A DNA stretch of 64,000 bases from NCBI GenBank assembly GCA_043228905.1, contig JBHGNT010000009.1, positions 11,966,001 through 12,030,000 of the forward strand, in the 5' to 3' direction. The notes under the pieces were generated by a model. That model saw only the letters and a program-made list of their open reading frames with translations, ran no database searches and was not told the DNA's origin. Below, in pieces: positions 497 to 62,900 of the stretch (its first letter is position 1; every line of letters starts with the position of its first letter). The position numbers were made by a program, and so were the translations under genes. This DNA is from Azolla caroliniana (lineage: Eukaryota > Plantae > Polypodiophyta).

Positions 497-930
497 TGTC
501 AGGAACAGTACTAAGACAGAGAAGGAATTAGTACTAAAAGAAGTATTAGTACTAAGAGAGGTGAAGAACTATCGAGACAAGGAAAGAGTGTGAGAGGGAG
601 GGAGGGAGGGAGAGAGAGAGTGTGAGTGAATGATGATAAGAAAAGATATATATTATGTGAAGAAAATGTACAGTAGGTAGGAAGGAGGCTTAAGACTGGC
701 GTTGAACCGATTTGGTTCGAAATAATGCCTTGTGCCTCCTTTTATAGTGTTCTAAGGAATACTCCTGAAGTTTCTAGAATGTTCTAGAGAAATCTGGAAT
801 ATACATCAATTTTCTATAATAAAACATAAATGAAAATAATATTTTATGTATTACAATGTATAGTCTAATGGTGGAGAGCTCGACCCATGTAGTATAAGGT
901 CATGGGTTCGATTCTTGCCATATCATGACA
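497..930 (-). repeat. LTR of Tcn1-like family A
   Basis: TG...CA termini, TATA-like CTATAAAAG and a (GA)n tract; homologous to 1725-2154, 8292-8722, 13492-13927 and 57303-57767. Confidence 0.93.
855..922 (+). other. tRNA-like Pol III A/B-box cassette in the family A LTR (antisense to the element)
   Basis: TAGTCTAATGG (861-871) and GGTTCGATTC (905-914), starts 44 nt apart as in tRNA genes. Confidence 0.7.
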
Positions 931-939
931 CGTTGCCTT

Positions 940-1820: not shown

Positions 1821-1859
<39 letters not shown>

Positions 1860-2078: not shown

Positions 2079-2146
2079 AATAGATGATCTAATGGTCAAG
2101 AGCTCGACCCATATAACCTAAGGTCATGGGTTCGATTCTCGCCATA
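2079..2146 (+). other. tRNA-like A/B-box cassette in the A2 LTR
   Basis: TGATCTAATGG (2085-2095) and GGTTCGATTC (2129-2138). Confidence 0.7.
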
Positions 2147-2154
2147 TCATGACA

Positions 2155-5410: not shown

Positions 5411-8291
5411 GTGCAACAACTCAAAGCAACCATCGTAGCGATGCAACAACAAGGGATTCATAAAGAACCAAAGATTGGCCTTCCCATGAAGTTCGATGGA
5501 ACGCGATCGCAGTTTAGAGGGTTCCTGAACCAGGTACGATTAGTTATTCAAATGCATCCTTCCCGGTATCCAACCGATACATCACGAGTGCATTTAGTAG
5601 GCACTTTGTTAAGTGGCTCGGCGTTGTCATGGTTTGCTCCACTATTAGAAAAGGAATCCCTATTACTCAACAATTTTGAAGAGTTTCTAGGTGAGTTTAA
5701 AGCATGTTTCGGAGATACTGACAGCATCAGGACCGCAATCAACAAAATTCGGCGATTACGCCAAGGTAACCGTCCAGCCTCCGCATACGCTGCAGATTTT
5801 CGCCTACTCGCCGCCGATATCCCTTGGGATGATCAAGCGTTGATGGAGCAATTTCGTTATGGTTTACGCAACGACGTCAAGGATTTACTCTTGGCCTTGC
5901 CCGAACAGCCAAAGTCCTTTACAGAAGCAATCAGTCGCGCGGTGAGATGTGACAACCGCCTCTTTGAGCTACATTCAGAAAGACAGCTACAGATGCCGAG
6001 GCCAAGATTAGAGCCCACCTACGCCTCAGTGGTAGCAAGACCTTTTCTGAGGGAGTCATATAATGCGCCTCCAGTGAATACTCCGACTCCGATGGAGATT
6101 GACACTGCATGTCGTCGAGGGCCATTATCCGAAGAAGAAAAGCAGTGACGCCGTACAAATCGACTATGTCTTTACTGCGGTAGACCAAGACATATCGCAA
6201 TAAATTGCCCCCATAGGCCTCGAAGACAGGTAAACCAAATAGTCGCTAGGTCTAATTGTACTAAACCTGAGCCTATTTCACTAGGAGTATCTGATAGTCC
6301 TAATAGTACTAATAGCCCAGATCTAACGAACAAATTTGATGTCCTTAGTCAGTTAGGAGAAGAGTTAAACGACTAAGTCCAACCAAAATAGGAGCCGTTT
6401 GGTTCGACAGCCCAAGATCTGTGCAGCCCATTAGTGGTTCCATTACCTCTAAGCAAGTTAGTGATGTGTTCGTAGCCCAAGTAATAGTTAGTACTAAAAT
6501 TACCCCTCCAGTACATGTCCTAGCACTCCTAGATTCCGGAGCTAACTCTTACTTTATGGATAAGAAATTTGCTCAAGCTCATAAGATATCCCTAAGAAAA
6601 CTCCAGTGTCCAGCCTCTGTAGTAGTCATTGATGGACGTGCCATTGCTTCCGGAAATATCATAGAAGAGTCAGAGCCCATTAATATTGTCCTAGATAACT
6701 TAGCATGTGTAGTATCATTTAATATTATTAGTATCCCAGAACATCCCATAGTTTTAGGATTACCGTGGTTCGAGTTACATAACCCAGACATATATTGGAG
6801 AACAAGAGAAATCCGGTGTCGACAAACCCAAGGGTCAACTCAGAAGATGGCAACCATTTCGATACGTCAATTGCGTAAAGAAGGGCACGAGGAGGAAATG
6901 TTCCTCTTTGCAATATCAGTTAACCCATCCAGCACCACTACCGAACAATCCATCGTTCAACTTCCCGAGAAGTATCGTCATTACGCCGATGTGTTCGATA
7001 AAGTACAAGCCAACACACTTCCTCATCATCGACTGTACGATTGCCCCATCGATTTACAACCGGGAAAAGAGCCGCCATGGGGACCGATCTACAATTTGTC
7101 ACCAACCGAGCTAGAAGTCCTTCGGGCCTATATAGAGGAGAATTTGGAAAATGGTTTCATATGACATTCGAAATCTCTATCCGACGCGCCCATTTTCTTC
7201 GTCAAGAAAAAAGATGGATCACTTCGTCTCGTTGTAGATTACCGTGGCTTGAATAAGGTTACAATCAGGAATAGGTATGCTCTTCCCCTTATCTCAAGTC
7301 TTTTAGAACGGATCAATGGTGCCAGGTTCTTTACGAAGATCGACTTACGGGGAGCATATAACCTCGTACGGATCCGACCAGGAGACGAATGGAAGACCGC
7401 ATTTCACACTAGATATGAGCACTTCGAGTATACGGTCATGCCGTTCGGCCTCACTAATGCACGGGCAGTCTTCCAGCACATGGCTAATGATATATTCCGA
7501 GATCTATTGGATGATTGTTTGATCATCTATTTGGATGATCTACTGGTTTATTCAAAGACCCAAGAAGAACATGATTCTCATGTACTATTTGTACTAAAAC
7601 GACTTCTAGAACATGGTCTGTATGCAAAGCTGGAAAAATGTAGTTTCGGGTGCAAAGAAGTGGAATTTCTTGGCTACATCATTTCGTCAGAAGGCATCTC
7701 CATAGACCCAGCTAAGGTCAAAACGGTGGTAGAATGGCAGACTCCACGTTCGGTGTGGGATGTGCAAAGCTTCCTAGGCTTTGCCAATTTTTACCGGAAG
7801 TTCATACAAGATTACTCAAAGATCGTTCTACCTCTCACACAACTTACCAGGAAGGGACAACCGTTCATTTGGTCTGAAGAAACGAACGTGGCTTTCGAGA
7901 GTCTTAAAAAGGCATTTACATCGGCTCCAATTCTAGCTCATGTCGATACGGAAAAATCATTTATTATCGAAGCTAATGCATCGGATTTTGCATTGGGGAG
8001 CATTCTGTCACAATAGGGGAATGATGAGAAGCTACATCCTGTGGCTTTTCACTCACGCAAGTTTGACGACGCCGAAATGAACTACGAAATTCATGATAAG
8101 GAGCTATTTGCAATAGTGGATTCTTTTATGCAATGGAGGCATTTTCTGGAGGGATCCTCTCATCCGGTCACCGTATTTAGTGATCACAAGAACCTTGCCT
8201 ACTTTCAGGATGCTCGTGTGTTGAATCGACGTCAAGCTCGGTGGGCCCACTTCCTCACGCGTTTCGACTTCAAAATTACATATCGTTCGGG
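5411..8291 (+). mobile_element. Tcn1-like family A internal fragment (gag, PR, RT, RH)
   Basis: Gag ORF 5411-6148, CLYC zinc knuckle, protease LLDSGA, RT YLDD, RH EANASD and FSDHKNL. Confidence 0.93.
6364..6408 (+). promoter_or_regulatory. Putative -1 ribosomal frameshift signal between gag and pol (also at 9935-9979 and 59042-59086)
   Basis: G_TTA_AAC, 6-nt spacer, stem GTCCAACCAAA/TTTGGTT(C/G)GAC. The pol frame is -1 to gag and open from 6364. Confidence 0.75.
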
Positions 8292-8557
8292 GACCTTAGG
8301 TTACATGGGTCGAGCTCTTGACCATTAGACCATCTATTGTAATACGTAGGATATTATTTTTATTTACATTTTATTATAGGAAATTAGTGTATATTCCAGA
8401 TTTCTCTGGAACATTCTAGAAGCTTCAGGATTACTCATGAAAAAACTATAAAAGAGGGCACTAGGCATTATGTTGAACCAAATTGGTTCAATGCCAGTCT
8501 TAAGCCTTTTAGCCACCATTGTATATTCTCTTCATATAATACATATCTTTCTTATCA

Positions 8558-8617
<60 letters not shown>

Positions 8618-8795
8618 CCTCTCACTCACTCCTTCCTTCTCTCGAAGAAGTTCTACACCTCTCATAGTAATAATCCTTCGTTTAGTACTAATTCCTTCTC
8701 TGTCTCAGTATTGTTCCTGACAGTTTGAACCAAATTTTCTACCTTCTATCTCTATCATTTCCTACTTATCTCTTATTCCTCTTTTCTTTCATCCC

Positions 8796-9947
8796 ATGAC
8801 AATTGTTAGGGCTGAAGAATATCAATCTGTTTTCTCGGAATTTCAATGCTTGAAGGAGAAGTTCCATGCTTTGGAACAAGAAAACCAATGGTTGCTGTGG
8901 GATCTTCAGCAAATCTCCTTAGAAAAGCAACAAAAGCAACAACAACATGGGGAACTTGCATTACGCGTGCAACAACTCGAAGCAACCATCGTAGCGATGC
9001 AACAACAAGGGCCCGGAACACAAGGGATTTATAAAGAACCCAAGATTGGCCTTCCCACGAAGTTCAATGGAACGCGATCGTAGTTTAGAGGGTTCTTTAA
9101 CTAGGTACGATTAGTTATCCAAATGCATCCTTCCCGATATCCCACCGATGCATCACGAGTGGGTTTAGTAGGCACTTTGTTAAGTGGCTCAGCGTTGTCA
9201 TAGTTCGCTCCACTATTAGAAAAGGAATCTCCGTTTCTCAACAATTTTGAAGAGTTTCTAGGTGAGTTTAAAGCATGTTTCGGAGATACTGACAGCATCA
9301 GGACCGCAATCAACAAAATTCGGCGATTACGCCAAGGTAACCGTCCAGCCTCCGCATACGCTGCAGATTTTCGCCTACTCGCCGCCGATATCCCTTGGGA
9401 TGATCAAGCGTTGATGGAGCAATTTCGTTATGGTTTACGCAACGACGTCAAGGATTTACTCTTGGCCTTGCCCAAACAGCCAAAGTCCTTTACAGAAGCA
9501 ATCAGTCGCGCGGTGAGATGTGACAACCGCCTCTTTGAGCTACATTCAGAAAGACAGCTACAGATGCCGAGGCCAAGATTAGAGCCCACCTACGCCTCAG
9601 TGGTAGCAAGACCTTTTCTGAGGGAGTCATATAATGCGCCTCCAGTGAATACTCCGACTCCGATGGAGATTGACACTGCATGTCGTCGAGGGCCATTATC
9701 CGAAGAAGAAAAGCAGTGACGCCGTACAAATCGACTATGTCTTTACTGCGGTAGACCAAGACATATCGCAATAAATTGCCCCCATAGGCCTCGAAGACAG
9801 GTAAACCAAATAGTCGCTAGGTCTAATTGTACTAAACCTGAGCCTATTTCACTAGGAGTATCTGATAGTCCTAATAGTACTAATAGCCCAGATCTAACGA
9901 ACAAATTTGATGTCCTTAGTCAGTTAGGAGAAGAGTTAAACGACTAA
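8796..9947 (+). pseudogene. gag: gag with premature stops
   Basis: ORF pieces 8796-9083 and 9411-9719, then the zinc knuckle. Confidence 0.88.
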
Positions 9948-12900: not shown

Positions 12901-13478
12901 GATCGTTTGGAGCAGTTACGCAAGATACAAGCGGATTTATCTACTCCTCTCCAACAAGCTCAACAAACACACAAGGTCTACGCGGATCGTCATCAACTTC
13001 CATCCAGTTTTAATATTGGAGATCGGGTGTGGCTGCTACGACGACACATCAAAGACTACTCGTCCATGTGAGAAGTTAGAGTATCGGCGATTAGGTCCTT
13101 TCCGTATTATTGGACAGATTAATGATGTTGCTTTTCGTCTCGATCTACCTCCTCAACTTCGGATACATCCGGTGTTTTATAGTTCTATCCTCGAACCCTA
13201 CCACGAGAGCACCATCCCAGGACGTCTTATCCAACCTCCACCCCCGATCGAGCTTGAAGATGGGCCGGAGTACAAGGTTGTCGCCATCCTTGATTCCAAG
13301 CTTGTTCGCAACAAGCTCTACTATCTAGTTGATTGGCTAGGCTATAGCCCCCAGTGAACGTACTTGGGAACCGATCGAGAATGTGACCAATGCTCGTGCT
13401 CTTCTTGAAGACTTCCATCATCAATATCCACACAAACCAGGTCCTCAATCCAAGACGACTCGTGACACTCGTCGTTTT
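9935..13478 (+). pseudogene. pol: pol (PR-RT-RH-INT-chromodomain), disrupted
   Basis: ORFs 9992-10735, 10820-11683, 11899-12866 and 12737-13357. Confidence 0.92.
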
Positions 13479-13499
13479 AAAGGGGGGATAGTGTCATGA

Positions 13500-13567
13500 T
13501 ATGGCAAGACTCGAACCCATGACCTTAGGTTATATGGGTCGAGCTCTTGACCATTAGATCATCTATT
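13500..13567 (-). other. tRNA-like A/B-box cassette in the 3' LTR of family A
   Basis: Minus strand reads TGATCTAATGG...GGTTCGAGTC. Confidence 0.7.
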
Positions 13568-13927
13568 GTAATACGTAGGATATTATTTTCATTTACATTT
13601 TATTATAGGAAATTAGTGTATATTCCAGATTTCTTTGGAACATTCTAGAAGCTTCAGGATTACTCCTGAAAACACTATAAAAGAGGGCACTAGGCATTAT
13701 GTTGAACCAAATTGGTTCAACGCCAGTCTTAAGCCTTTTAGCCACCATTGTATATTCTCTTCATATAATACATATCTTTCTTATCATCACTCTCTCTCTC
13801 TCTCGATCTCTCTCTTTCTCTCTGTCTCGCTCACTTCTTCCTTCTCTCGAAGAAGTTCCACACCTCTCATAGTACTAATCCTTCATTTAGTACTAATTCC
13901 TTCTCTGTCTCAGTACTATTCATGACA

Positions 13928-15587: not shown

Positions 15588-16414
15588 TGTCGTAGTGTAT
15601 TTCGTACACTACGTGAAAAAGTAAAAATAATATAACCGATTTAATTACATATAAATAAATAAAATAAGAATATCAAGATATTTATCACCAATAAATAAAA
15701 TAAGAATATCAAGATATTTATCACGTGCATAAGGCAAGATTCGAACCTTGTACCTCCACGTAGCCAAATATCAACTTTACCATTATGCTACCTTATCTTT
15801 AGTGTTCTACAAATAGATTTAATAACTATAAGTCCTTTATTTGCACCTACCTTTATTAAAAGGTAAATCGTGCATTTTTAGAGTGTGTGAATATTTTATA
15901 GAAAAAAACGCAAGCAACTAAAAAGTGACTCGTACACATCTAGCGTGCATGAGCACTATATTTAGCAAATAAAAGCAAGGATTAGAAAAGCATCACATGC
16001 ATATTTAGTGTGCATGAACATATTAGAAAAAAAGCATGTAGCTATGCTTAGTCTCTCCCATCACTACATAAGGATGGGGAGCACAATGTAATAGGTGTGT
16101 GAAATATTTGGAAATTGGATATATTTCCGAAAACACTAACCGATTAATATAATCGTGGGATTCACAAAAATAATATAATCTATACTTGTGGGATTCACAA
16201 GTTTCTTATATTTCTCTTTCAACGGAAGTTTATATTCTTATATTCATATTGATTAATCTAATACAATACACTCGTGGGATTCACGAGTTTGCTATAACTC
16301 TTTCTTACAACATATTTATATTCTTATTAGCCTTAAAACTCTCCTCTTCCTAGTCCAAAACCCCAGCGGTTCCCACCCGACTCACGCAACGATCCGGAGC
16401 CGAAAGGCTCGACA
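15588..16414 (+). mobile_element. Solo LTR (family J/L) inserted in the B1 protease
   Basis: TGTCGTAG...CTCGACA with a 4-bp TSD GCGG (15584-15587 and 16415-16418); homologous to 51124-51836 and 59923-60637. Confidence 0.92.
15729..15796 (-). other. tRNA-like cassette in the J LTR
   Basis: Terminal stem ATAAGG/CCTTAT, A box TAGCATAATGG, T-arm CAAG-GTTCGAAT-CTTG. Confidence 0.75.
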
Positions 16415-20539: not shown

Positions 20540-20605
20540 GAGCTAATGGACTAGTGGATAGTCACATTGTCTTCTAGCTCAAGGTGCACGGTTCAAATTA
20601 GGTCT
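20540..20605 (+). other. tRNA-like cassette in the B1 LTR
   Basis: D-arm GACTA-GTGGA-TAGTC with A box TGGACTAGTGG; B box GGTTCAAAT; ~80 nt upstream of CCTATAAAAG. Confidence 0.65.
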
Positions 20606-20901
20606 TACAATGCAACGTGATTTAAGGAATTTTATTCCTTTTTCATTCAAGAAAAAATTGGCGACCCCCCTTCTTTTTTTCCTATAAAAGGAGGTCAAGG
20701 GGGCCTCATTTGGGAGGATGTTTTGGGGCGAGCAGACTATCGCCATTTTTCCTTCGGAGCTCTTCATCTTCTTCTTCACCACTTCTCTTCATCTCTTACC
20801 CCTTCATCCCCTCATCACCACGTGCTCGTCTTCTTCGTGTTGGCACTCGAAGTGCTCGTTTACGGTGCTCGTGAACCCGAGCTTTGTTGGTTCGACGTTG
20901 C

Positions 20902-27258: not shown

Positions 27259-28025
27259 TGTAAAGAACCGATGGTGATTCTTGTGCAGCAGAATAGGTTA
27301 GAGATGTGTGTTATGTGTGTGTGTGTATGAGAGAGAGGAGAGGAGAGAAACACAAGATAGATAGGAAAAAGAAATACTCAAGACGATTGTATATTATAGG
27401 AGATTAACCGACACATTACAAAGTAGGAGGAGAAGGCTTTATATAGTCACTCTCTCTCTTCATTAACTACCGAAGCTCATGGGTCATGGGGAATGTGAAA
27501 AATCATTAGTTATGTGTCATAGAATATGATTGTATGACACATAATTAATGTGTAGAGAGTGGTGGTGTGACTAGGGTAAGCTTGATTCTCAACATGCCCC
27601 CTCTAGCTCAATTCGGGTCGGTTCCTTTCAGTTGATATCCGTGTCGGTTGGTACCCGGTTCACACAATGTCTAGTTTGTACTACCCCTCAAGTTAGGCAA
27701 GACAAGGATTGTTAGTCCAAGGTCTGACATGAATTGCCGAAGCTTGTCGGCTCCTAGAGCTTTGGTGAAGATGTCGGTTGTCTAAAGATTTGTGTTGATG
27801 TGTTGAAGGTCAACATCTCCAGCTTGAACACGCTCTCGGTTGTCTAAAGATTTGTCGTGAACTACAAAAGCTTCACATTAAAAGTCTACAGTAAGATAAA
27901 TACGTAATTAAAATAAAATAAATCTTGATAATGTTTTATACATAAAGATAATATTAACAACACACTATGATAATATATACATTATATGTAGAGGAAAATA
28001 ATAAATATATATATTATATTACAAG

Positions 28026-28097
28026 GACAAGAGAGGACTTGAACCAATAACCCCCACATTATAACTCTCAATACTTTCCATTTACCCTATACTTGTC
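28026..28097 (-). other. tRNA-like cassette 1 in the E LTR (also 31038-31109)
   Basis: 72 nt bounded by the stem GACAAG/CTTGTC; TAGGGTAAATGG and GGTTCAAGTCC. Confidence 0.72.
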
Positions 28098-28201
28098 ATA
28101 CATATAAAGTTATATGTGTTGTTTTATTTGACGTAGTATTGTATGGTTTAAACAATAAACCATATAATATACTACATGTGCACCATATAGCATATTACAT
28201 T

Positions 28202-28272
28202 GGCAAGAGAGGACTTCAGCCAACAACATCTACCTTACAAGTGTCGAACCTTACCATTTACCCAATATCCAT
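28202..28272 (-). other. tRNA-like cassette 2 in the E LTR (also ~31256-31328)
   Basis: Paralog of cassette 1: TGGGTAAATGG...GGCT(G/C)AAGTCC. Confidence 0.6.
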
Positions 28273-28574: not shown

Positions 28575-28642
28575 AAACAGCTAGCTTGACGGTCGTGGTG
28601 CTCAACTCACAACAAAAGGGTAGAGGTTCAAGTCTTACCCTC
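28575..28642 (+). other. tRNA-like cassette 3 in the E LTR (also ~31623-31690)
   Basis: TAGCTTGACGG, loop CTCACAA, and GGTTC(A/G)AGTC inside hairpin AGGGTA/TACCCT. Confidence 0.55.
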
Positions 28643-28975: not shown

Positions 28976-31900
28976 ACGAGGAAGTAGAGGAGACAATCGA
29001 TAGTGAGGAGTCATCAACATGGCAAGTACAAGCACAATGGATCGGGTAAGGTTGTTTATTGAAAAGTTGAATCAAGATCCACTATTTCATGCCTTACGAG
29101 AAGTTCGAGAAAAGATTGGTGTGTTTGATGGCACAAATATTTCGAAGTATGTGAATATATATTATGATGAAATGGAAATGTCTAGTGTGAATGATGTCAA
29201 TATGATAGCAAACTTTTATAAATTAGTGGACATGGAATTAAGAGATAGAATTCGTGAAATATAAGCATTGCATAGTTTGGATTGGAATGCATTCAAAGAA
29301 GCACTTGTGTCTGAATATTTTTTTGAAGATTTCTCTCACGTTACTATGCGTTCATTCCATGAAGGGGTCCTAAAAGAAGATAAAGGATTATCTATGGCTG
29401 ACACAAAAAAGAGAGTTTGATAGATTGTCTGGAGACTTAAAGGCAGAAGAAATAAATTATTTGTCTTGGCAAAAGGTTGTTTTATTTTGTAGGCAGTTGA
29501 CAAGACATATAGAAAAGAGTTGGAACTTATGCATGAGGTACCAAATACCGAGGATGGTATAACTACGGATTAGAATGAGGTAACAAATGCTTGTAATAAG
29601 TTTATGACGAGAATGCAAAGGAATGGTGCAATGCTAAAAATACCACATGTGGGAATCACGAATTGGCTTGATCAAAACATCGAAGTTCAAAGACTTGGTC
29701 AAGAACCATCACACGAAATGGTGCATCAACCATGAGAAATGACCGGAACTAAGAGTGAGTCTTTGCTTGATGATTTAGTTCAAAGTATGAAAGATCTAAT
29801 AATTAAAGTGGCAAAGCTTGAGAATGGTCACACTTCGAGGTCAAGGGAACCATTTCGACCTCGATGCATGTGGTGCGATAGTCTTGAACATCAATTACGT
29901 GATTGTGAAGAATATAAAGACATGGAAAATTGAAACTTGTTGTATTGGAAAAAGGGCAAGATTTACTTAGTTGAAACTAGAAGTCCACTTACAAAGAACT
30001 TTGGTGATGGTGGTGTCAAGGTTAAGTTTGAAGAATCTGAAGCAAAGAAGGCTTCTGCAATGTACTACTTGGCAACGACAGGAATGCGTCTCGATGACAC
30101 GCCATACCGATCATCATTCTGGGAAAAGGTTGTAAGTTCTGCACAAAAGCAAAAGCTAAAGATGGAAGACCTTCATGTTGCCGGAGATTCTATAAGGAAA
30201 AATATTAGATGGGATGTTCTGATAGATGCTATGACATTCTATGCTCAGATGCCAGAACACCAAGACCATGAGGTGATAGTGGAAGAAAAAAGGAAAAGGT
30301 CGGATGATGAGATTGGCTCGACAAAAAAGCATGAAACAAGAGAAAGCAAAAGAAAAGAAATGGATGCAAAAGTAACAAAAGGTAAATCTGGTCCTTCGTT
30401 CAAATTAATGTCTAATATTGAAAAGGATACAGATTTAAAGAAAATTTTAGAAACAAGAATACTAGACAGTCGAGTAGAATTTACACTAAGAGAAGTCTTA
30501 GGTATTGCAGAAAAGGAATTTCGTGATGAAATAATTGATATTATGCGAAGAAAGAAGTAAGTAAATGAGCAGGTTACAGAGACAAATCCAAAGGTGGCAT
30601 ATGAAGTGGTGCGCAACAAATCAAACAATATCATTGTTGACTTTCAACATGCATCAACCTCAACAGATGTAAGAAGCCTTTACTCTCGCAAATGTTGGGC
30701 AAGAGCAACTACTGAGCATCATGTGAAGATTGGAAATGTTCCAGACCCAATGATGGCACTTATTAATCATGGTTCAGAAATAAATATAATGAGTGCTGAT
30801 TTTTACAGGAAAGGTAGATGGCCAATTGATACTCAACATGCTTGGCGAGTAAAAGTTGGCACATTAGTCACCGAAGATTTACATTAAAACTCTACAATAA
30901 GATAAATACGTAACTAAAATAAAGTAAATCTTGATAATGTTTTATAGATAAAGATAATATCAAAAACACACTATGATAATATATATATATACATTATATG
31001 TAGAGGCAAATAAAAAATATATATATTATATTACAAGGGCAAGAGAGGACTTGAACCAATAACCCCCACGTTATAACTCTCAATACTTTCCATTTACCCT
31101 ATACTTGTCATACATATAAAGTTATATGTGTTGTTTTATTTGACGTAGTATTGTATGGTTTAAACAATAAACCATATAATATACTACATGTGCACCATAT
31201 AGCATATTACATTGGCTCAAAAAGCATACATGTGCACCATATAGCATATTAAATTGGCAAGACAGGACTTGAGCCAACGACATCTACCTTACAAGTCTCG
31301 AGCCTTACCATTTACCCAATATCCATGATTTATATATTATATTATTTGAATTGATAGTGTATAGTCCAAACCATCTAATGTACTACATGTGCACCATATA
31401 GCACACATGCAAGAGCCCTCTTTGCATGTGGGCCATATGGCCCACATGCAAAACCCTCACCTTCCTATATAAGGAGAAGGGAGTATAGTGACAAGGATAT
31501 CGAAGGAATTAAAATCAAAGAACTATATTGTATGATATATCTATCGAATCAAATAGAATTATATTACATAAGAGTTATCGTAAGATAGAAAGAGGAAGAC
31601 AAGAAGGAAGACAATAAAAGAAAATAACTAGCTGGGCAGTTGTGGTGCTCAACTTATAACAAAAGGGTGGAGGTTCGAGTCTTACCCTCCTCGAAAGCTA
31701 GAAGGGACGATTGTGATCTACTCTTAACAATGAGAAGAGCGGTTGAGAAGAGCGGTTACCTTGTGCGACAAAGTTTGAAGGATCAACGACGCTCACAACT
31801 AGTTTGTAACTCTTTCATCTAATAATTATAAATTTCTTACATTCCCTCAAATATCATTTTACATCCTATCTTGTCATATCTCGTTGATCTCTGTTTGCTA

Positions 31901-40857: not shown

Positions 40858-40931
40858 ACTAAATGGCATGGCTTAATGGTAAGCCAATTGACTCCTAACT
40901 TGGAGGTGCAAGGTTTGAATCCTTACTTGCC
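40858..40931 (+). other. tRNA-like cassette in the H LTR (also 46244-46317)
   Basis: D-arm GCTT-AATGGT-AAGC, loop CTCCTAA, T-arm AAGG-TT(C/T)GAAT-C(C/T)TT; A box TGGCTTAATGG. Confidence 0.8.
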
Positions 40932-40974
40932 CTCCTTGTATATGTATATATGTATATATATTTATTTATCTAAT

Positions 40975-41345: not shown

Positions 41346-42078
41346 GCGGTCCGGTTTTGGTTGGCCAAAACCCTTTACGAGTAGCTAGCCCACCTCCACT
41401 CTTAGTTCAAGTTATCTTGAACTCTCTATGCGCCACACATAGACACAAAGATAATATCTTTTGTTGTACCTTATATATGATGAGAGTCGTATTTGTCGTG
41501 CCTATGTGGGATATCTCACAATTTTCTCTTTTCCTTTCACAAACTTTATACCCTCATATCTTTACATTTAGTTGTCCGTTTCTCGTGTAATAAAGTGCAT
41601 TCGAAACCTCCATCATTTTGTACTTAGATATTAAATTTATTTAAAATGTTATCTTCACAATTATTGTATTATGTGATTCATACTCGATTTCATACGTTTT
41701 ATGGGATTTTCACACTATTGACGAAAATCTTCATGACAGCGTATTCTCCCGTGTACACACAACAATTTTGAATGCTCCGAACTTCGACGCCAGTTCCCCG
41801 AGACAGATCTACACCATCTCGCCTTCCTCGACGTTTTACATCGATGGAGGCTAAGGAGTCACATATATCTTTGATCTTCGAGGTTTCCCTTCGGCATAAT
41901 CGGCCTTCCTTAGTGCCGGAGCTTCAAGAAGCAGTTTCTTTAATCTTCGCATCGCCTTTGTGTGCTCGTCTCGCCATTCGAACTTTATTCTTTTCTTTAG
42001 TAGTCCATATAACGGTTTGGCGACATGAGCGTAGTGAGGAATCCATATATGATAAAACGCGCACGCTCCAAGGAACCT

Positions 42079-45724: not shown

Positions 45725-48700
45725 GTATTAATCTTGACTTGATCCTTCCTACCGCCTCTTTCACGTCGGGTTCACCACTTAATTATGTCGTGAAGATCCG
45801 TCACTACGCGCGGATCGTGAGGCGGAACCGCCGGGGTTCTGGACCGGAAGGATTCAAAGTCGGTACAAGCTTTGGCGCAAGCTTTAGCGAGAAAGTACTT
45901 AAGATAGATTGGGAAAAAGAAAAGTTGAGATTCCACGATTGAGAGAGATTGATTGAACTTTTAACTTTAGATTTAAGAAACAAGTTACACGATCAATTTG
46001 ATAACGAATTTCTTCTTCTTAATTCCATAATAAAAAAAAACATGTTTTTTCTCCTCCCCCTTCCTTCTTTTATTGATGCTCTCATGCATATGATGCATGT
46101 GAGGGTACAAGACACGCATAAATTGCATGTTTGCCATTTGGCGCTTATTTATTACATGTGGTGCATGATAACCATGTCACTCATTTTAGCTCTCATATAT
46201 GAGAATTTACATGTAAAAGTACAATGATAGAAATATAAATTCAACTAAATGGCATGGCTTAATGGTAAGCCAATTGACTCCTAACTTGGAGGTGCAAGGT
46301 TCGAATCTTTACTTGCCCTCGTATATGTATATATTTATATATTTATTTATCTAATCGCCGGACGCCGGTTCGTCGGATGCCGTCGCCGGTTGCCGCTGAA
46401 AACCCGTGCCATCGCCGGATGTCGTCGTCGGTTGCCGCCGGATGCCGTCGTCTCACCGGCGCCGGATACCGGTGTTGCCACCGGATGTCGTCGCCGGTTT
46501 CCGCCGGATACCGGTGCCGCCGCCGGATGCCATCGGTTACCGGTCCCCGCCGGATGCCGTCGTCTCACCGGCGGCGGCGGCATCCGCCGCCGGATACCGG
46601 TTTGCCGTCGAATCACCGGCTCCATCGCCGATCCGGTTTTGGTTGGCCAAAACCCTTTACGAGTAGCTAGCCCACCTCCACTCTTAGTTCAAGTTACCTT
46701 GAACTCTCTATGCTCCACACATAGACACAAAGATAATATCTTTTGTTGTACCTTATATATGATGAGAGTCATATTTGTCGTGCCTATGTGGGATATCTCA
46801 CAATTTTCTCTTTTCCTTTCACAAACTTTATACCCTCATATCTTTACATTTAGTTGTCCGTTTCTCGTGTAATAAAGTGCATTCGAAACCTCCATCATTT
46901 TGTACTTAGATATTAAATTTATTTAAAATGTTATCTTCACAATTATTGTATTATGTGATTCATACTCGATTTCATACGTTTTATGGGATTTTCACACTAT
47001 TGACGAAAATCTTCACGACAGCGTATTCTCCCGTGTACACACAACAGTTTTGAATTCTCCGAACTTCGACGCCAGTTCCCCAAGACAGATCTACACCATC
47101 TCGCCTTCCTCGACGTTCACATCGATGGAGGCTAAGGAGTCACATATATCTTTAATCTTCGAGGTGTGATAAGCCACCGACAAATCGCGTTGTCGTAGGT
47201 TGCTCAGCTCCTGTCGGAGTTGAAGCTTTCTAGATGTAGTGCTTGCGGCGAAAATCTTCTTCAAATTTCCCTAAGCATCTTTCGGCGTTTTTGCATCACG
47301 AATGTAGCTTAGGAGTTGTTCGCCAACACAAGACGCAAAGTAGTACAATACTCTGCTCGTCGACTATTCCCACGCCGGGAAATCTCTGTGTGTCGATTTG
47401 GGTGCTGTGTCATTTGCTCCGTCGACATAGCTCCAGTAACCGTGCCCGAGCAGGTACTGGTGCATCTTGTAGGACCAAGACGTGTAGTTTTTTCTGTCGA
47501 GCTTCTCGATAGGAAGCGAGCTAGCCATGCCTCTATCCATTTTGTTTTTCCTGTTCTTCTTGCTTAGTTTTCTTTTCAAGCTATGTCGGCTATAGAGGTT
47601 CTCAACCCTCGTGCTCTGATACCATGAAAAAGATTATGTGTGGAAGCAATAGAGAACTGAACACGGAAAATACGCAGGTTTAATGGAGAGCTTGAATATA
47701 CACAATACGCGGGAGAGACACAGAGAGAGAACACACAGAAACTCAATTCAAAAAAAATACTCACTCTATTCTATACATACTTCGTGCTCGGTGAGCACCT
47801 TATATACAAGCCCTGACAATCGGGCTGACACAAGTACTGACAGTACTTGAATGCTCATATAGGAGCCTACTACACTATCTCCCAAAATTATTTCTTACGA
47901 GGAATACCATAATAACGGCCTTCCGGTTTACGCACCGATACGGCCACGTTATGCATACTGTTTTATGCACCCAATCTACACATTGGGTTAAGCACCGTAT
48001 TACGCACTAATGTTGAGCTTGTCTCTCAACAAAGATCAAAGAAAGAGGGAGGATTCCCCCTTGCTTGAATGGTTGTTCTCATCGGGCTGAACCGTGGTGC
48101 AAGGCCGTGGAGGCATATTTGCAACATCTCGTCATCATCCACATTGATGCATATTGATCCGAGTGAGTCACAAAGCTCCTTGATCTTCAAGGTGTAGCTC
48201 ATTATGGACATGTCCATTTGTTCGATGTTGTTCAACTCTTGGTGGAGTTTAAGCTTTTGTGCCGTCATATTGGCAGCGAATATCTTCCATAGATTCTCCC
48301 ATGCTTCTTGTGGCGTCATGGCTTCTCGAATGTGGCCTAGAATGTGGTCATGAACACATGTCTCCAAGCAATACATTACTCGACTCGGCGCTTGCTCCCA
48401 TGTTGAGTAGTCGGCGTCCTTTGGGTCGTGTCGATTTTCTTGTGCTCCTTTGATGTAGCTCCAATAACCTTGGCCGAAAAGGTATTGGTGCATCTTGTAC
48501 TCCCAAGATGCGAATTTGTTTCGGTCCAAGTTCTCGATAGGGAGAGCGCTCCCAAATTGAGTATTCATGGTGTTCAATGTGGAGGTACTACGATCGCGAT
48601 CAACCGGATTTCTTAGAATTGTTGGCATAGACACAACACACGCAGATGGGCCAGATCGACCTACCAAAGCGCTCTGATACCATGTAAAGAACCGATGGTG

Positions 48701-49084: not shown

Positions 49085-52000
49085 GTTTCCTTGTGGGCCG
49101 TAATTTCGGCATCCAACTTGTCTTGGATTGTTTTCATGCCCTTCCTTGCCATTGCTCGAATGTCCTCTCCCGATCTGATGATTGTCAGAGATTGGAGCGG
49201 AGTCGCTCTATCTCCATTTTTGTGAGTTCCGCCTCTTTTGCCGTTATCGCCGTTTGAGCTTCAACCTTCTCATTGAGTCTTTGTATTTCGGGTGTTCGAG
49301 AGGCTGCGGTGCTGGTTGAGGCTATGGCTTCTTGTAGGCGGTGCTTGAAGTCGATGATCTTCTTCTAGGCCTCTTTGAATTGTTGTTTGGCGAGTTTTTC
49401 GGCCTTCTTCACGGGCTTGTTTTTATAGACCATATCTTTCACCCAACCGTACCGTGGTGAGCTCCATGTGCACGTCGACTAAGACGGTGTTCAATGCGGA
49501 AGCTTGATTCCCATATGGCCTTTTTCCACGTTCCTCATACGGCCGAATTTGCTCAAAGGGCACTCATCTTCTCCTTCCGCTAGTCCTGCCCGAGCTTGCT
49601 CGATCATCTGTCTTTCCGCATGTTCCTCTCTACCATGCGTTGCTAGACCTTGATTTGTTGCAGAGCCAAGAAATCCATGATTTCAAGTGATGTGCCGAAT
49701 TGTAATAAAGCAGCGAACTCATGGGCTACGACTAGCATATCTGAGTAGACCATCACGACATTATCTGGTGTGAGAATGCCTTTTCGTCTCTTTGTATTCC
49801 CAGCGTTTGGGTTGAGGATTGCTCGGCCATTCGTCTATTTCATGGTCTGTGATGTGTTTCTTGTTCCGTGTGATGACGGACTCCGGGGTGTGATTGCTTC
49901 CTTCCTCCTCCCATTCCATGGTTGTGAGGTGTTCGAGACGCCGCTTCTGCTGATGCAGAGCTAGTGATGGTCGGGACAAGGCTGGAGTTGGTATTGTCGG
50001 TGAGGGGAACACTATTGTCAATATATTGTTGGATGATTGGGCGGAGCTTCTTACCGGCTTGGAAGGCATGGATTCCTTCGCACAACGATGGCCCTATGAT
50101 GATGCCCCAATTGACGGTGTGTCCCTCAAAGGTTGATATGATGATGTTGGCCTTCTGTTTGGGCATCCCATAAGCATTGGGGTGCACGCAACCCACCTCT
50201 AGTAGGAACTTGGAGATCTCACGGAACAAAGGATCGGGGGCATCCCTTGTCCTATACACCTTGGTAGAGAGTGAGTATTTGCCAAAATACCATTCGAGGA
50301 CCTTGGTGGGAGGGATCTCGAAGTGGCGTTCCACTATGGCGGTCAAGTCCAACTTTTTTGCGGATTGTGGCATTCGTGATCATACCCACATTGATCTGCG
50401 TCCCCATGTTATGGGAGTTGGGTCGGGGCGGTGCTTCCGCTACTCGGATGTATCTGACAAAGCCGTGGTCATGGAGCCACCATTGCAGAGCAGGTGAGAT
50501 ATTGATCGACATGGTAGTCTTGGCATCGATTGTTGTAGAAAGGTTGTCGGTGTGGTGTAAAGAGCTTGGAGGGCGTTTGGTTAGAGAAATGGCTTGAATT
50601 ACCTTTTTGTGAGATGGGCACACTAGTGTTCAAGATTCTTTGACCAATGTTCTCCACGCGTGTGATTAGAACGGGTACTTGCTTTCTTGGGATGTGCGCC
50701 TACATAGAAGATCTTAAATATATAGTTTTGACTACCTTTTCTTTTTCCTTTTATTGTTTTTTTCTTTTTTCTCAATTTGATACCTAATGGTAATGGATGT
50801 TAATATATTACATTAATATTACATTATTACACAATGGGGTTCGTATTAATGAGGGGTGGGTCCCCCGCCCGAGATTGATTTGGCAAGGACTAGGCTGGCA
50901 TTTTCGCCCGTTAACTTCGCGGCGTTTCTGAATGGATTTGAGGGTGTGGGGCCTATGTAGAGTTTGAGTCAAAAGCCATTAACCTTTTGTTGTAAAATTT
51001 CCCCGGTGAGAGTACGAGGATCAAAGGTGCCGTTTTCGGCTCCGACAATCCAATACGGCCCCATCCATCGGAATTGAAGCTTGCCCGACTTTTTTCCCAT
51101 GTATGTTTGGAACCTGAGTACGGTGTCGTAGTGTATTCCGTACATTATGTGAAAAACGTATGGAGTACTTGATTGAATAAGTATGACGAAGAAGAAGAAA
51201 ATAGGAAAATGCATGTTACATGCATAGGGCAAGTTTCAAACCTTGTATCTCCATTATACTAACACATCATGGATGATATAATATAGATTTAATATGTAAA
51301 GAGTTATGCTTACGCATATTTTCTAGGGAAACAAAGCGCTACTCATTCACATCCAGTGTGTATACAAGCTTTAGTTAGAAGAAAACGCATGATAAAAAAA
51401 ACGCATGCTAGAAAAACCAAAGCTAGAAAAAAAAGCATGAAGTCCATTGTTAGAAAAGGCATGCAGACTATAGTTAGAAAATACATGGATTGCTATGCGC
51501 TAAGCCTCTCCCATCACTATATAAGGGTGGGGAGCACAATGTAATAGAGAGAGAAAATTATGGGGTGATTATTTGGGATTAAATATTGATTAATATAATA
51601 CTCATGGGATTCATGAGGTTTTCGATCTCTCTTTTCAAATCTATTCCAATCTATTATTAGGGTTCTCAGGGTTGATTAATATAATACATTATACTTGTGG
51701 TATTCACGAGTTTTCTATCTCTCTTTCTTGCAATCTATTCATAACTAGACTCGTCTCAAGTTCTTCTCCACCTAGTCCAAAACCCTAGTGGTTCCCACCC
51801 GACTCACGCAATGATTCGGCGCCAAAAGGCACGACACATTGGGTGAACCCGATATGAAGACGGGGCTGCAAGGAGATGGAGAATCCACAAGAGGCAATGA
51901 ACATGATGATGAAGTTCAAGCGGATGTTGCAAGAACAATGCATGATGTCGGAGATTGCGGTGGTAGTAAAGCGGCTCGTGCAACGGAACGAGCAATTCAA

Positions 52001-57302: not shown

Positions 57303-57310
57303 TGTCATGA

Positions 57311-57378
57311 TATGGCAAGACTCGAACCCATGACCTTAAGTTACATAAGTCGAGCTCTTGACCATTATACCATCTATT
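57311..57378 (-). other. tRNA-like A/B-box cassette in this family A LTR
   Basis: Minus strand reads TGGTATAATGG...GGTTCGAGTC. Confidence 0.7.
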
Positions 57379-57607: not shown

Positions 57608-57665
<58 letters not shown>

Positions 57666-57781: not shown

Positions 57782-59922
57782 CCGTCCTCCTTCCGTCTCC
57801 TCCTTTCCTCCTCTTCCTTTTATCTTCTTACATATCCCCTTTTTCTGGTCTTCCCTTCGGTTTCCCTCATCTTCTTACCCCTTTCTTCCCTTCATACTAA
57901 TCCTCTTATCCTCCCTAGTAAAATGGAAACTGTTAGTGCTCAAGAATACCAATCTGTTTTCTTGGAGCTCTAGTGCTTAAAGGAGAAATTTGCAGCACTA
58001 GAACAAGAAAATCACCGTTTGTTGGGGGATCTTCAACAAATAGCGTTGGAAAAACAACAACACAGGGAGCTGACGTTATGTGTACAACAACTTGAAGCGA
58101 TTATTGTATGATTACAACAACAAGGATCAAGCACTCAAGGGATTCACAAAGAAGCCAATATCGGTTTTCCTGCAGAATTTGATGGGACCCGATCACAGTT
58201 TAGAGGTTTTTTGAACCAGGTACATTTAGTGATTCAAATGCATCCTTCTCGATATCACACCGATGCATCACGAGTCGGACTAGTAGGCACCCTACTTAGT
58301 GGCTCAATGTTGGCATGGTTCGCTCCATTGTTAGAAAAGGAATCTCCATTACTAAACAATTTTGAAGAATTTATAAGTGAGTTTAAAGCCTGTTTTGGAG
58401 ATACTAACAGCATAAGAACTACAATCAACAAAATCCGGCGATTACGCCAAGGTGATCGTCCAGCCTCCGCATACGTTGTAGATTTCCGCCTACTCGCCGT
58501 TGATATCCCTTGGGATGATCAAACATTGATGTCACAATTTCGTTATGGTTTACGCAAAGATGTCAAGGATTTAATCTTGACCTTCCCCGAAGAACCAAAG
58601 TCATTAATAGAAGCAATCAGTCGCGCGGTGAGATGCAACAACCGTCTTTTCGAACGACGTTCGGAACGGCAATTCTAGATGCCAAGGGCAAGACCAAAGT
58701 CCACGTACGCCTTAGTGGTAGCAAAACCTTTTCCGAGGGAGTCATATAATGCATCCCCAACAAATACTTCGACTCCAATGGAAATCGACACCACACGTCG
58801 TCGCGGACCACTATCGGAAGAAGAAAAGTACTGACGCAGGGAAAATCGACTATGTTTGTATTGCGGGGGACCGGGACATATTGCAGTGAACTATCCCCAT
58901 CGGCCAAAAAGGCAGGTAAATCAAATAACCACAAGTACTAATAGTACTAAACCCGGGTCTATTTCTCTAGGTGTGTCCGATAGTCCTAATAGCCCGAGCC
59001 TTTCAAACAAATTTGAAAATCCTTAGTCAACTAGAAGAAGAATTAAACGATTAAGTCCAACCAAAATACGACCCGTTTGGTTGGACAACCATAGATCTGT
59101 GCAACCCATTAGTGGTTCCATTTCTTCTAAGCAAGTTAGCAATGTGTTCTTAGCTCAAGTAATGGTTAGTACTAAAAGTACTCCTCCAGTACATGTCTAA
59201 GCACTCTTAGATTCCGAAGCCAACTCTTGCTTCATGGATAGGAATTTTACCCAAGCTCTCGGATATCCCTAAGAAAAACCTTGTGTCCAGCCTCTGTAGT
59301 AGTCATTGATGGTCGTCCCATCGCTTCTGAAAATATCATAGAAGAGTCAAAGCCCATTAATATTGTCCTAGATAACTTAGTGTGTGTAATAGCATTTAAT
59401 ATAATTAGTATCCTAGAACATCCCATTGTTTTGGGATTACCATGGTTTGAATTACATAACCGAGACATAGATTGGAGAACAAGAGAAATCCGGTGTTGAC
59501 AAACCCGAGGATCTACTCATAAGATTGCAACCATTTTGCTACATCAATTGTGTGAGGAAGGACGCAAGGAAGAAATGTTTCTCTTCGCAATATCAATAAA
59601 ACCCTCCAACACCACTAAAGAGGAGTCCACCGTTCAACTTCCAAAGAAGTATCGTCATTATACCGTTGTGTTCGATAAAGTACAAGCCAGTAATCTTCCT
59701 CACCATCGACCATATGATTGCCCCATCGATTTGCAACCGGGAAAAGAGCCGCCATGGGGACCGATCTACAATTTCTCACTAACCGAGCTGGAAGTCCTTT
59801 GAGCCTATATAGAGGAGAATTTGGCAAATGGTTTCATTCGGCATTCGAAATCTCCAACCGGCGCACCCATTTTCTTCGTCAAGAAAAAAGATGGATCACT
59901 TCGTCTCATTGTGGATTACCGT

Positions 59923-62900
59923 TGTCGTGCCTTTCGGCTCCAGATCATTGCGTGAGTCGGGCGGGAACCACTAAGGTTTTGGACTAGGAGAAAAGAAAAT
60001 TCTAAGGCAATTAAGAATATGAAATATATTGTAAGAAAGAAAGATATGAAAAACTCGTGAATCCCACGAGTATAGTGTATTAGTGAGTACTTAGATTAAG
60101 AGAGAAAAATAGTTAGCAAATTCATGAATCCCACGAATATATTATATAAATCAACTCTTGTAAAATAATCAACAACACCATACATCTTTCTCTCCTCCTT
60201 ATATAAGGATGGAAGAGGCTAAGCATAGCTTCATGCTTTTTCTAAAGTGTTCATGCACACTAAATGTGCATGAGTTGCTTTTTACACTATGCTTCTATTT
60301 CCTAAATATAGTGCTCATGCTTGCTAGATGTGCATGAGTAATATTTTATTGGTTTAGATTTTCTTATAAATAAAGTATTCACTCACTCTAAAAATGCATG
60401 ACTTACTTTTTTAATAATGGCAGGCGTAAATAAAGGTCTTATAGGTATTAAATCTATATTTAAAACACTAAGGATAAGTTAGTACAATGGTAAGGTTGGG
60501 GTTTGTCTACGTGGAGGTGCAGGGTTTGAATCCTGTCCTATGGACGTAATAAATATTTTATTTTGTTTATTATACGTACTTTAAATCGGATATAGTATTT
60601 TTCATATTTCACGTAGTGTGAGATTCACACTACGACACTCGCCCCCTCTGAACCCGCACATCCTCTGGTATGTGCAGAAGTCCCCGATGCTTGCTATTCA
60701 CCTTCATCCGAAGCTTCCTCCGATTCTCCCCTTAAGTCGACTATGAGTTGTAATCCACTTTCTTCGCTTTCTGCATCACCGTGATCTTCGTTTGATTGCT
60801 CCTCCTTGTCGGTCTTGTCTAGGATCACATAGGGTTCTTCATCAATCCGCTTCTTGAAAATCTTCACCCGTTTCCCAGTTATAGGCACTCGTAGCATCGT
60901 TCCATCCAACTCACATAGTCGGTAAGTTCTGTTGTCGAAAACTTTCCGAACCTCGTATGGCCTGAACCACCTTTTCGCGAACTTCCGCATCGTTGTATGT
61001 TGATGATCCAAACTACTGTCGTAGACAATCACCAAATCTCCTTCTTCAATCTTTCGCGGTCATAGTCAGTGCTTTGTGTCGAACCGGCTTTTATTCCGGA
61101 ATCGCGCTTCTTCTTGTTGGCTTATTGCTTCTGCTATGTCTTCTGGTCTTCCCTCTAGTTGTCGTATCCGGACCGCTAGTAGTTTTTCTTGGCTCATCTC
61201 TTCCTTCCATGGTAGCACTCTCCATGTCGCGATCGCGGTTTCCGTTGGCATTACTAGTGCTTGTCCGATCATGAGTTTTGCCGGCGACATGCAACTGGTT
61301 ATGGAGTTATGCGTCGTCCGATCCGCCCATAGTGCATATGGAAGCATCTGCGGCCAATCCTTCACCCTTCCATCGCATACCTTCGCAAGTGCTTTGACGA
61401 TCGGACTATGTCCTCATTCGATCTTCCCGTTGGCTTCCGAATTGTATGCCGTTGCCAGTGTTAAACGAACTCCATGTTTGGTGAAGAATCCCCTAGCTTT
61501 GTCAGAGTCAAGTTCTGCCCGATCCGCAATCACTTGTCCTATGCACTTGTATATGCAAAACACCTCCTCCAAAAGAAATTGGCATACTGCAGAACACGTT
61601 TTCCTTCGTAGTGCTCGACCTTCTACTTGGTTTGTGAGATCTTCCCGAGCTAACACCAAGTACTTCTTTTGTCCGATCTTGGCTAGCATGGCTAATTTTT
61701 CAACCATGCACTTGAAGTTGATTGTTGGTGAAAATGTCGGATGTAATTCATCTCGGTGTCGAACCCTAGAGTAGACTTGACACTTCTCGCAGCTTCACGT
61801 GAACTCCGCTACATCTTTGTACATATTCTTCCACCAATATTTTTGTTTGATTTTCACAAAAGTTGCCCATGTTCCTCGATGTCCAGCCCAATCGGATTCA
61901 TGAAAGTTGGATATTATCCAGTTTCGTTTCTCTGTCGTCTTGACTACCCGAAGTGGTATGCCATCCGGTATTTTCGGCTCCCTCCATATTAATCCATTTT
62001 TCAAGAAGAACTTTCGGACTTGTCGCTTCTTACTTCGGATCTCGACTCTCTTTTCTTTATCATTCGTTGACACCTCGATCTCTTGTAGCATATTCCCGAT
62101 CGCCAAGCTTTCTCCCTCATATTCTTCTTCTCAAAATTCTCGGATTACGTTTACTCGGCATATGTGCTCCGAAGCAAAGTAGTCTTCAGAAACTTCTTCA
62201 TTATCGGATTCGGCTATGTTGTCTCCGAACCGAACCCTTGATAGCATATCCGCTACCACGTTGTCTTTTCCAGAGATGTGTCGTACTTCCGGCTTAAGCG
62301 ACTTAACATATGCAATCCATCTTAGCATAGCCACATCCGGTATCGTGCAACACTGCATCATCCCGAGTATCGGAAGACAATCCGTTTCGATCACTACTTT
62401 GGCTCCGATCAAATAATCTCAATCCGATTTGATTGCCAACACGACTCCCCATAGTTCTCTTTTGACTTGTGCATACCCGCGTTGCCTTTCGTTGAGAACC
62501 TTTGCTCCGAATCGGATCGGATATCGCGGTCCATCCGGATCGGCTTGATTGATGACCCATCCGATTCCGGTTGGACTTGTGTCAACCGTTACTATGATCG
62601 GTCGGTCATAGTTCGGCTTCTTTAGGGCTTTTGCCCTCCGTAGTGATTTCTTGAGCTTCTTCACAGCTTTGGTATGCTCCGATTTCAATTCGAACTTCTT
62701 ACCCTTCCGCAACAAGTAATAGAGTGGGTCCGCAATAAGTGCATAGTGCGGAATCCATATGTGGTAGAATGCACACGCTCCAAGAAACCTTTGAACTTCG
62801 GATTGTGACTCGCATATTTCTTTCATAGCTTGAATCACATCGATCTTGGTCGGTGACGATCTTCGGCCGTAGGGCCCACATAGATGTCCGACTACCAATA

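Follow-up and report, generated by a model that had tools for sequence, protein, structure and literature searches.

The window analysed here, a stretch of 64,000 nucleotides (nt) of Azolla caroliniana (contig JBHGNT010000009.1, positions 11,966,001 to 12,030,000), is a nest of degraded long terminal repeat (LTR) retrotransposons, as self-BLAST of the stretch and Pfam searches on its open reading frames (ORFs) showed. LTRs of gypsy elements in this nest contain cassettes of about 70 nt in which an A box is paired with a B box, and such cassettes had been predicted from the letters of the sequence as tRNA-shaped RNA polymerase III (Pol III) modules in five different gypsy families. We located all of the listed cassettes (n = 13), every one of them within a gypsy LTR (Table 1). 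The cassettes are tRNA-derived, yet they are not tRNAs, and they have been retained across diverged families.

Table 1. Cassettes in the window and landmarks of the elements that carry them. PPT, polypurine tract; PR, protease; RT, reverse transcriptase; INT, integrase.
Feature	Position	Strand	Remarks
Family A cassette	855..930	+ (tRNA sense on +)	reaches LTR tip at 930
Family A cassette	2079..2154	+	reaches LTR tip at 2154
Family A cassette	13492..13567	-	initial ~76 nt of 3' LTR, immediately after PPT; antisense to + strand element
Family A cassette	57303..57378	-	at a 5' LTR tip
Family A cassette, truncated by rearrangement	8291..8338	-	B-box half lost
Family A 3' LTR, 436 bp	13492..13927	+	terminal inverted repeats; TATA box near 13676; (CT)n tract
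Family A chromovirus gag-PR-RT-INT-chromodomain region	5411-13357	+	upstream of 3' LTR
J/L cassette	15727..15797	-	antisense, ~270 nt upstream of TATA box (~16065); Rfam tRNA model 17.7 bits, full length
J/L cassette, inverted LTR copy	60474..60541	+	B-box C56 changed to T (CpG decay)
J/L-type cassette, internally deleted	51222..51253	-	A box joined to T arm
B1 cassette	20541..20611	+	sense, ~70 nt upstream of TATA box (20682); LTR start 20299 after PPT
E1 cassette, 5' LTR	28024..28094	-	antisense, ~325 nt upstream of TATA box (28423)
E2 cassette, 5' LTR	28200..28268	-	tandem paralogue of E1; antisense, ~155 nt upstream of TATA box; B box degraded
E1 cassette, 3' LTR	31036..31106	-	motif scan and nhmmer
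E2 cassette, 3' LTR	31254..31322	-	motif scan and nhmmer
E3 weak B-box element, not a full cassette	28598..28639; second copy 31645-31687	+	sense; terminal stem, 8-11 bits; downstream of TATA box
H cassette	40858..40933	+	antisense to - strand element, ~170 nt upstream of TATA box (~40690); cloverleaf-like fold
H cassette, second LTR	46244..46319	+	15/15 near-universal tRNA positions kept
H 5' LTR	45786..47003	-	11-bp terminal inverted repeats; sits in copia gag gene; 4-bp target duplication; second copy 40400-41722
H primer-binding site	45760..45777	-	complementary to plant tRNA-Trp(CCA) 3' end; same site in E at 28958-28975 (+)

Cassettes in the window

The motif scan combined the A-box core AATGG/AGTGG with the B box GGTTCRANTC, at most one mismatch being allowed in the B box. 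Over the whole window the two boxes were 32-33 nt apart at 13 motif-scan sites, and three further matches, with spacings of 29, 40 and 42 nt, lay outside the cassettes. By family, the scan placed four sites in A, two each in J/L, E1 and H, and one each in B1 and E2. A search by nhmmer with a cassette hidden Markov model (HMM) added the second E2 copy (28200), a cut-down A copy (8291-8338) and a deleted copy (51222-51253), the last of which had been noticed as a partial site at 51223 and is an internally deleted copy of the J/L type. The HMM found no match in the window outside these gypsy LTRs and no free-standing copy. This agrees with the original prediction, which had seen no cassettes in the copia or other LTRs; the positions that it gave were all recovered by motif scan and nhmmer, and the boxes at tRNA spacing that it described were found in all six cassette types. 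That one A-B spacing is common to six independent cassette types and corresponds to the canonical distance from G19 to G52 of a tRNA, which is 32 nt. The exact B box GGTTCRANTC occurs 10 times in the window against 1.5 expected, a count that is inflated because LTR copies repeat it, and the relaxed box pattern gave about 15 non-tRNA matches in 606 kb of unrelated contigs, that is, about 1.6 expected per window.

The position and orientation of the cassettes were fixed by locating the PPT, the LTR ends, the TATA box and the primer-binding site (PBS). The predicted placement in U3, mostly antisense, was borne out: A, J/L, E1, E2 and H have antisense orientation, at distances of 110-325 nt upstream of the TATA box, and B1 is in sense orientation about 70 nt upstream of it; E3 is downstream. 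The upstream distances as a whole range over 70-325 nt. Likewise, three cassettes per LTR had been proposed for E, of which E1 and E2 are genuine, whereas the third, E3, is weak and consists of a B box and a terminal stem only. In R/U5, at 140-200 nt downstream of the TATA box, a sense element of B box and terminal stem is found in E (both copies in Table 1) and again in L001c, a related LTR (L001 10082-10119).

Derivation of the cassettes from tRNA

No tRNA was called in the window by ARAGORN at default settings, and Rfam gave none at its gathering threshold (29 bits for the tRNA model) nor at E<=10. When small windows were scanned, the Rfam tRNA model matched the J/L cassette over its full length, at exactly 15727-15797, with 17.7 bits, and the cassette of a related element (L130) over its full length with 21.8 bits (E 0.012), both below the cut-off. 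The same scans gave no tRNA match for the H or A cassettes, H being matched by a tRNA-like bacterial sRNA model only (22.6 bits); in the comparison with the tRNA model, which had been proposed together with the prediction, J/L was matched below the gathering threshold, H and A not at all. Relaxed ARAGORN picked three cassettes and called J/L and L130, but it does not discriminate, because its 40 calls were mostly spurious.

Each cassette keeps 11-15 of 15 near-universal tRNA positions. When the canonical cloverleaf was laid on the alignment of 13 cassettes, 47% of the cells paired, the same as in shuffled or slid controls. A cloverleaf-like fold was obtained for H only, and the family A cassette forms one long hairpin; the description as tRNA-shaped therefore applies to H and to none of the other cassettes, and a tRNA mimic at the RNA level is not what these sequences are. 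With nothing at standard thresholds and cloverleaf pairing at control level, we rejected the cassettes as functional tRNA genes. Mean identity across the six cassette types, anchored on the B box, was 0.57 in the A box, 0.49 in an AGGT motif of the variable loop and 0.80 in the B box; between and beyond the boxes it was at background (0.33-0.38), in line with the predicted difference of the cassette cores between families. From this conservation of the boxes only, and from cloverleaf pairing at control level, it follows that the feature that has survived is the Pol III internal promoter and not the shape of an RNA.

Elements that carry the cassettes

The five families of the original prediction resolve into two lineages, the chromovirus A and a tRNA-Trp-primed group comprising H, J/L, E and B1. 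The cassette-bearing hosts encode gag, PR, RT, RNase H and INT, or are deleted copies of such elements; they are 5-6 kb long, with LTRs of 436-1320 bp. PPTs were located in A and B1 and a tRNA-Trp PBS in H and E.

Family A, which lies on the + strand, is a chromovirus that encodes gag, PR, RT/RNase H, INT, an SH3 domain and a chromodomain. Its 3' LTR begins directly after the purine tract, and the cassette occupies LTR positions 1-76, antisense and pointing out of the element. No PBS matching a tRNA 3' end was seen in family A. The sequence at 8723-8739, after the 5' LTR, resembles one arm of a palindrome at 13703-13723, about 30 nt downstream of the TATA box, and this likeness suggests that family A may prime itself in the manner of Tf1. 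A motif after the TATA box, GGTTCAAC...CAGTCT, is also present in the related contigs L125, L127 and L129. The segments 5445-8284 and 9017-11854 are a 2.8-kb internal duplication (97% identity) of the family A gag-PR-RT, joined via a truncated LTR at 8292, which points to a tandem or recombined element.

The second lineage has a common gag with DUF4100 and LTRs that start with TGTC(A/G)TG. B1 and a relative (contig L001) have a similar purine tract ahead of the LTR, and the U5 ends of H and J/L are alike by eye. The PBS of H and E is TGGTGAACCCGACGTGAA. A metagenome scan with its complement recovered five identical plant-type tRNA-Trp(CCA) genes (loci L005, L011, L017, L024 and L105) with a 3' end that matches the PBS, and the lineage is therefore primed by tRNA-Trp. 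The H element lies in the copia gag gene with the 4-bp target duplication ACGC. The same ~160 bp of copia gag precedes the second H LTR and flanks the first (41723-41884 and 47004-47165); since this flank is copied and the internal region of H lacks an integrase, the two H LTRs are a rearranged duplicate of flank and LTR and not a simple 5'/3' pair.

The LTRs of H, J/L, E and L001 contain clusters of CATGCA or RY-like motifs between the cassette and the TATA box (46080-46240 (-), 15850-16060 (+), 28270-28420 (+) and L001 6830-6950). GC-rich tandem repeats lie in U3 of the Trp-primed LTRs, immediately 5', in element orientation, of the AT-rich region with the cassette (46340-46640 (-), 40990-41190 (-), 15330-15480 (+) and L001 6470-6800). 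The B1 LTR has an array of ~106-bp tandem repeats downstream of the TATA box (20904-21618) and is interrupted at 21618 by a copia fragment.

Retention of the cassettes in related elements

Relatives of family A were collected with the INT-chromodomain ORF beside the 3' LTR as query, and six metagenome contigs were taken; locus L084, on a contig labelled human-gut metagenome, was excluded from all analyses. Five of the six (L125, L127, L128, L129 and L130) have an antisense tRNA-like cassette 0-35 nt from the LTR tip, at 44-70% protein identity to A in this ORF. In all five, as in family A, the order is pol ORF, purine tract, LTR start TGTCAT... and then the cassette. The A box is lost in L127. 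The best-preserved tip cassette, near-intact and tRNA-like with a 7-bp acceptor stem, is that of L130 (4803-4875 (-)), a chromovirus with an INT C-terminus that is merely 44% identical to that of family A. When aligned, the chromovirus cassettes have GGTC and the B box in common and little more. A cassette is missing from two more distant relatives, L131, a contig from a rust fungus, and L132 (32% identity). As far as these sequences tell, the module of the chromovirus clade is ancestral to a diverged group of families. The same tip cassette in five of six diverged relatives rules out sporadic, copy-specific SINE (short interspersed nuclear element) insertions for this clade, insertions that would have spoken against the prediction; in the Trp-primed lineage the presence of the cassette is patchy.

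Homologues of the H gag were found only on short metagenome contigs. The contig L001 contains three related LTRs, one with an H-like antisense cassette (9702-9766) and one with a B-box remnant only. In a census of the Trp-primed LTR types for which at least 700 nt were available (n about twelve), an antisense cassette is present in about five: H, E, J/L, L001c and L020. The patchiness implies that cassettes are gained as well as lost. When whole LTRs were compared pairwise by BLAST, H and L020 aligned within U3 over the cassette only (53 nt, 85%), and so did H and J/L (23 nt); L020 and L001c shared two aligning segments, one of them the cassette (72 nt at 90%). Between H subfamilies the cassette diverges by 0.16-0.22 per site, against 0.42 for the flanks. 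The repeated acquisition or ancient retention that had been proposed thus holds insofar as the cassettes are built into the LTRs and retained across diverged families, with the reservation of the patchy Trp-primed lineage.

Discussion

The original prediction knew of no earlier description of such cassettes, but a close kind has been published. Helenus, Cassandra and Ajax were grouped as TRIMp3, tiny non-coding LTR elements (TRIMs, for terminal-repeat retrotransposons in miniature) with a tRNA-like or 5S-like Pol III promoter in the LTR (Kojima, 2024; PMC10886601). Helenus elements are 311-1263 bp long, with a PBS, a PPT and target duplications of 4-5 bp, and their tRNA-like part is assumed to be the element's own Pol III promoter; a single plant Helenus, from Selaginella, was described, and the same paper mentions, as an aside, that tRNA-like parts occur in 'not a few LTRs' of Repbase (PMC10886601). 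Our cassettes resemble these elements in that tRNA-derived sequence lies inside the LTR, and that a PBS (H, E), a PPT (A, B1) and a 4-bp target duplication (H) are present. They differ in their hosts, which are coding gypsy elements or deleted copies of them with LTRs of 0.4-1.3 kb and hence no TRIMs, and in their placement, mostly antisense and upstream of a separate TATA box, by which they would not serve as the element's own promoter. Literature searches found nothing closer than Helenus. A tRNA-bearing LTR segment is thus known from Helenus, whereas its setting here, in full-size gypsy elements, mostly antisense and upstream of a TATA box, is new.

Other known systems share single traits with the cassettes. 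As in Cassandra, a Pol III promoter from a small-RNA gene is conserved inside plant LTRs; the Cassandra promoter, however, is that of 5S RNA (type 1), in sense orientation and transcribed by Pol III as the RNA of a non-autonomous element. The heads of SINE2 elements are likewise decayed tRNA-like sequences in which boxes and spacing survive and stems decay, but no SINE body, tail or flanking target duplication was seen at our cassettes, which move within LTRs and have no free copies in the window. The proposed mode of action, TFIIIC on a B box beside a Pol II promoter or a domain edge, would be that of tRNA genes (tDNAs) and B-box sites (ETC, COC) acting as barriers and of SINE insulators; those are host loci or exapted SINEs, whereas here the site would be carried by a transposon. 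A 2010 paper by Piekna-Przybylska and colleagues, cited in PMC6468702, reportedly described a tRNA-Lys3-like segment in U3-R of HIV-1 that is complementary to the primer tRNA and aids minus-strand transfer. There, too, U3 of an element that reverse-transcribes itself contains sequence like a tRNA gene, but this sequence matches the primer tRNA of its own element and works by RNA pairing, while the match to tRNA-Trp is weak here and absent in most families.

Since the elements have a TATA box of their own and are 5-6 kb long, and since the cassette mostly faces away from the transcript, it is no tRNA gene, and it is not the promoter of the element either. The account that we favor, tentatively and with somewhat less than even confidence, is that a decayed tRNA copy has become a heritable U3 module that recruits TFIIIC as a boundary of the LTR. 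Each cassette descends from a tRNA or from the head of a tRNA-derived SINE, and in two gypsy lineages U3 now passes it on as an inherited component. The stems of the anticodon, D and acceptor arms have mostly dissolved, and the remnant is in essence a type-2 Pol III internal promoter whose A box and B box keep the canonical spacing, with the AGGT(C) of the variable loop in addition. The B box is the main determinant of TFIIIC binding, and tDNAs or B-box sites are chromatin barriers in yeasts and mammals. We infer both TFIIIC binding and a barrier effect for the cassettes: they may act at the DNA level by recruiting TFIIIC, possibly with TFIIIB and Pol III, to the outer LTR edge in chromovirus A or to a site 70-330 nt upstream of the TATA box in the Trp-primed lineage. 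The result would be a nucleosome-free boundary built into the LTR that guards the promoter from neighbouring heterochromatin. Recruitment at the DNA level would fit the selective survival of the boxes and the position at the edge. The clearest candidate for an insulator may be the chromovirus clade, with a tRNA-derived B-box module that faces outward right at the edge of the LTR, and the chromodomain is expected to direct a chromovirus into heterochromatin. It is a further and more doubtful step to assume that autonomous gypsy elements carry their own TFIIIC-recruiting boundary because it was selected for shielding the LTR promoter from silencing; such a transposon-borne insulator would be a new functional class of LTR module.

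Several observations weigh against this account. The cassette is absent from about seven of the twelve or so Trp-primed LTR types (L001b/L002, L026, L051, L054, L055, L073 and L074), among them L026, of which the U5 aligns with that of J/L, so that it is dispensable in this lineage. B1 carries it in sense orientation. Among copies within one family, boxes and flanks decay at an equal rate, with no sign of constraint, although this comparison is uninformative because the copies are dead; a decay slower than that of the flanks, as the prediction had led us to expect for the boxes, is seen for the cassette between H subfamilies and not for the boxes within families. Two copies have lost C56 of the B box through CpG decay, which would also fit dead copies. 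The conserved AGGT(C) motif lies in the variable loop, outside the classical boxes, and is not explained by TFIIIC binding. The related loci are all metagenome contigs, maybe from the same plant or genus, so that the retention is one across families and not across species. Among the runs that contain the stretch, none is recorded as RNA. One run from the main organism, labelled 'RNA?', gave a small number of contigs at low depth over the LTR; what could be placed on the stretch were assembled contigs only, from which the starts, ends and strand of transcripts are not readable.

Part of this evidence would suit a neutral passenger, in which U3 turnover captured a tRNA retro-copy or a SINE head a few times and the sequence then hitch-hiked, its boxes inherited from a selected source. 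The patchy presence in the Trp-primed lineage, the cores that differ between families at background level and the equal decay of boxes and flanks within families are all in accordance with it, and the insertion of a SINE into LTRs is the origin proposed for Helenus (Kojima, 2024; PMC10886601). We nevertheless consider it rather unlikely, if a serious contender: five of six diverged chromovirus relatives keep the tip position and the orientation while the remaining U3 is unalignable, conservation of U3 among H, L020 and L001c is confined to the cassette, neither a SINE tail nor a target duplication was seen beside the cassettes, and the window holds no free-standing copy. That the cassette is an active Pol III unit, giving a short non-coding RNA, antisense or outward, that affects local silencing or serves as a packaged or primer RNA in trans, seems to us unlikely. 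Its A and B boxes are near consensus with AT-rich sequence upstream, runs of four or more T follow 12-31 nt past the cassette in J/L, B1, E1 and E2, and Pol III transcribes Cassandra, a TRIM whose LTRs are 5S-derived (PMC10886601). Such T runs are, however, common anyway in AT-rich DNA, H has none within 140 nt, and the tip cassettes of the chromoviruses lack a terminator of their own and would be read past the end of the LTR, into the PPT or into host DNA; moreover, the assembled contigs placed on the stretch gave no RNA support, and RNA structure is not conserved, cloverleaf pairing being that of the controls. A self-contained Pol III unit is accordingly possible in J/L, B1 and E and less likely in H and the tip cassettes.

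The roughly fixed distance upstream of the TATA box, beside clusters of CATGCA-type motifs, and the tandem duplication of E1 and E2, as often seen in U3 enhancers, would be expected of an ordinary Pol II enhancer or factor site that binds other factors and for which the tRNA ancestry is incidental; but the conserved part is precisely the Pol III box pair with its spacing and no other sub-motif, and in the chromoviruses the cassette lies at the outermost edge of the LTR, which makes this explanation quite improbable. Still less credence is due to a helper function in reverse transcription, by which the antisense cassette in the genomic RNA would pair with the primer tRNA and aid minus-strand transfer. 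The H/E lineage is primed by tRNA-Trp, most cassettes are antisense, and the H cassette is closest to tRNA-Trp (37/72 positions), with a common run of 7 nt in the anticodon arm. This similarity is modest, however, and absent in J/L, E and B1 (26-34/72, mostly box positions); B1 is in sense orientation, and family A carries the cassette although it seemingly uses no tRNA 3' end as primer. Even a descent of the H cassette from the primer tRNA-Trp is only a hint, because the 37/72 positions and the single 7-nt run were judged against the ten tRNAs that the fetched loci yielded, a set without a panel of other plant tRNAs. The original prediction had also considered a decoy for tRNA fragments, in which the antisense cassette in the transcript absorbs 3' tRNA fragments aimed at the PBS. 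The mostly antisense orientation would indeed place tRNA complements in the 3' part of the element RNA; but the last 22 nt of the cassettes match the 3' end of tRNA-Trp in the T loop only (runs <=6 nt), so that PBS-matching fragments would find no partner in them. We rejected the decoy for the Trp-primed lineage and give it hardly any credence overall.

LTR promoters are usually described as Pol II units only and, to our knowledge, pieces of small-RNA genes in LTRs, as in Cassandra, Helenus and Ajax, have so far been described in tiny non-coding elements only, which they are taken to drive by Pol III. Here, such pieces are retained in full-size gypsy elements, with a place and an orientation by which they would not be the element's promoter, and they are conserved across a diverged chromovirus clade at one fixed site, the LTR tip. 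The H family accounts for about 18,000 contigs in one run and is extremely abundant, among assembled contigs, in at least three coded organisms. If the cassettes are bound by TFIIIC, transposons would spread Pol III/TFIIIC sites ready for use, and with them perhaps chromatin boundaries, in their thousands. This would affect the reading of heterochromatin borders, tRNA-gene predictions and Pol III occupancy maps in such genomes, and it would offer a direct test of whether transposons bear anti-silencing devices.

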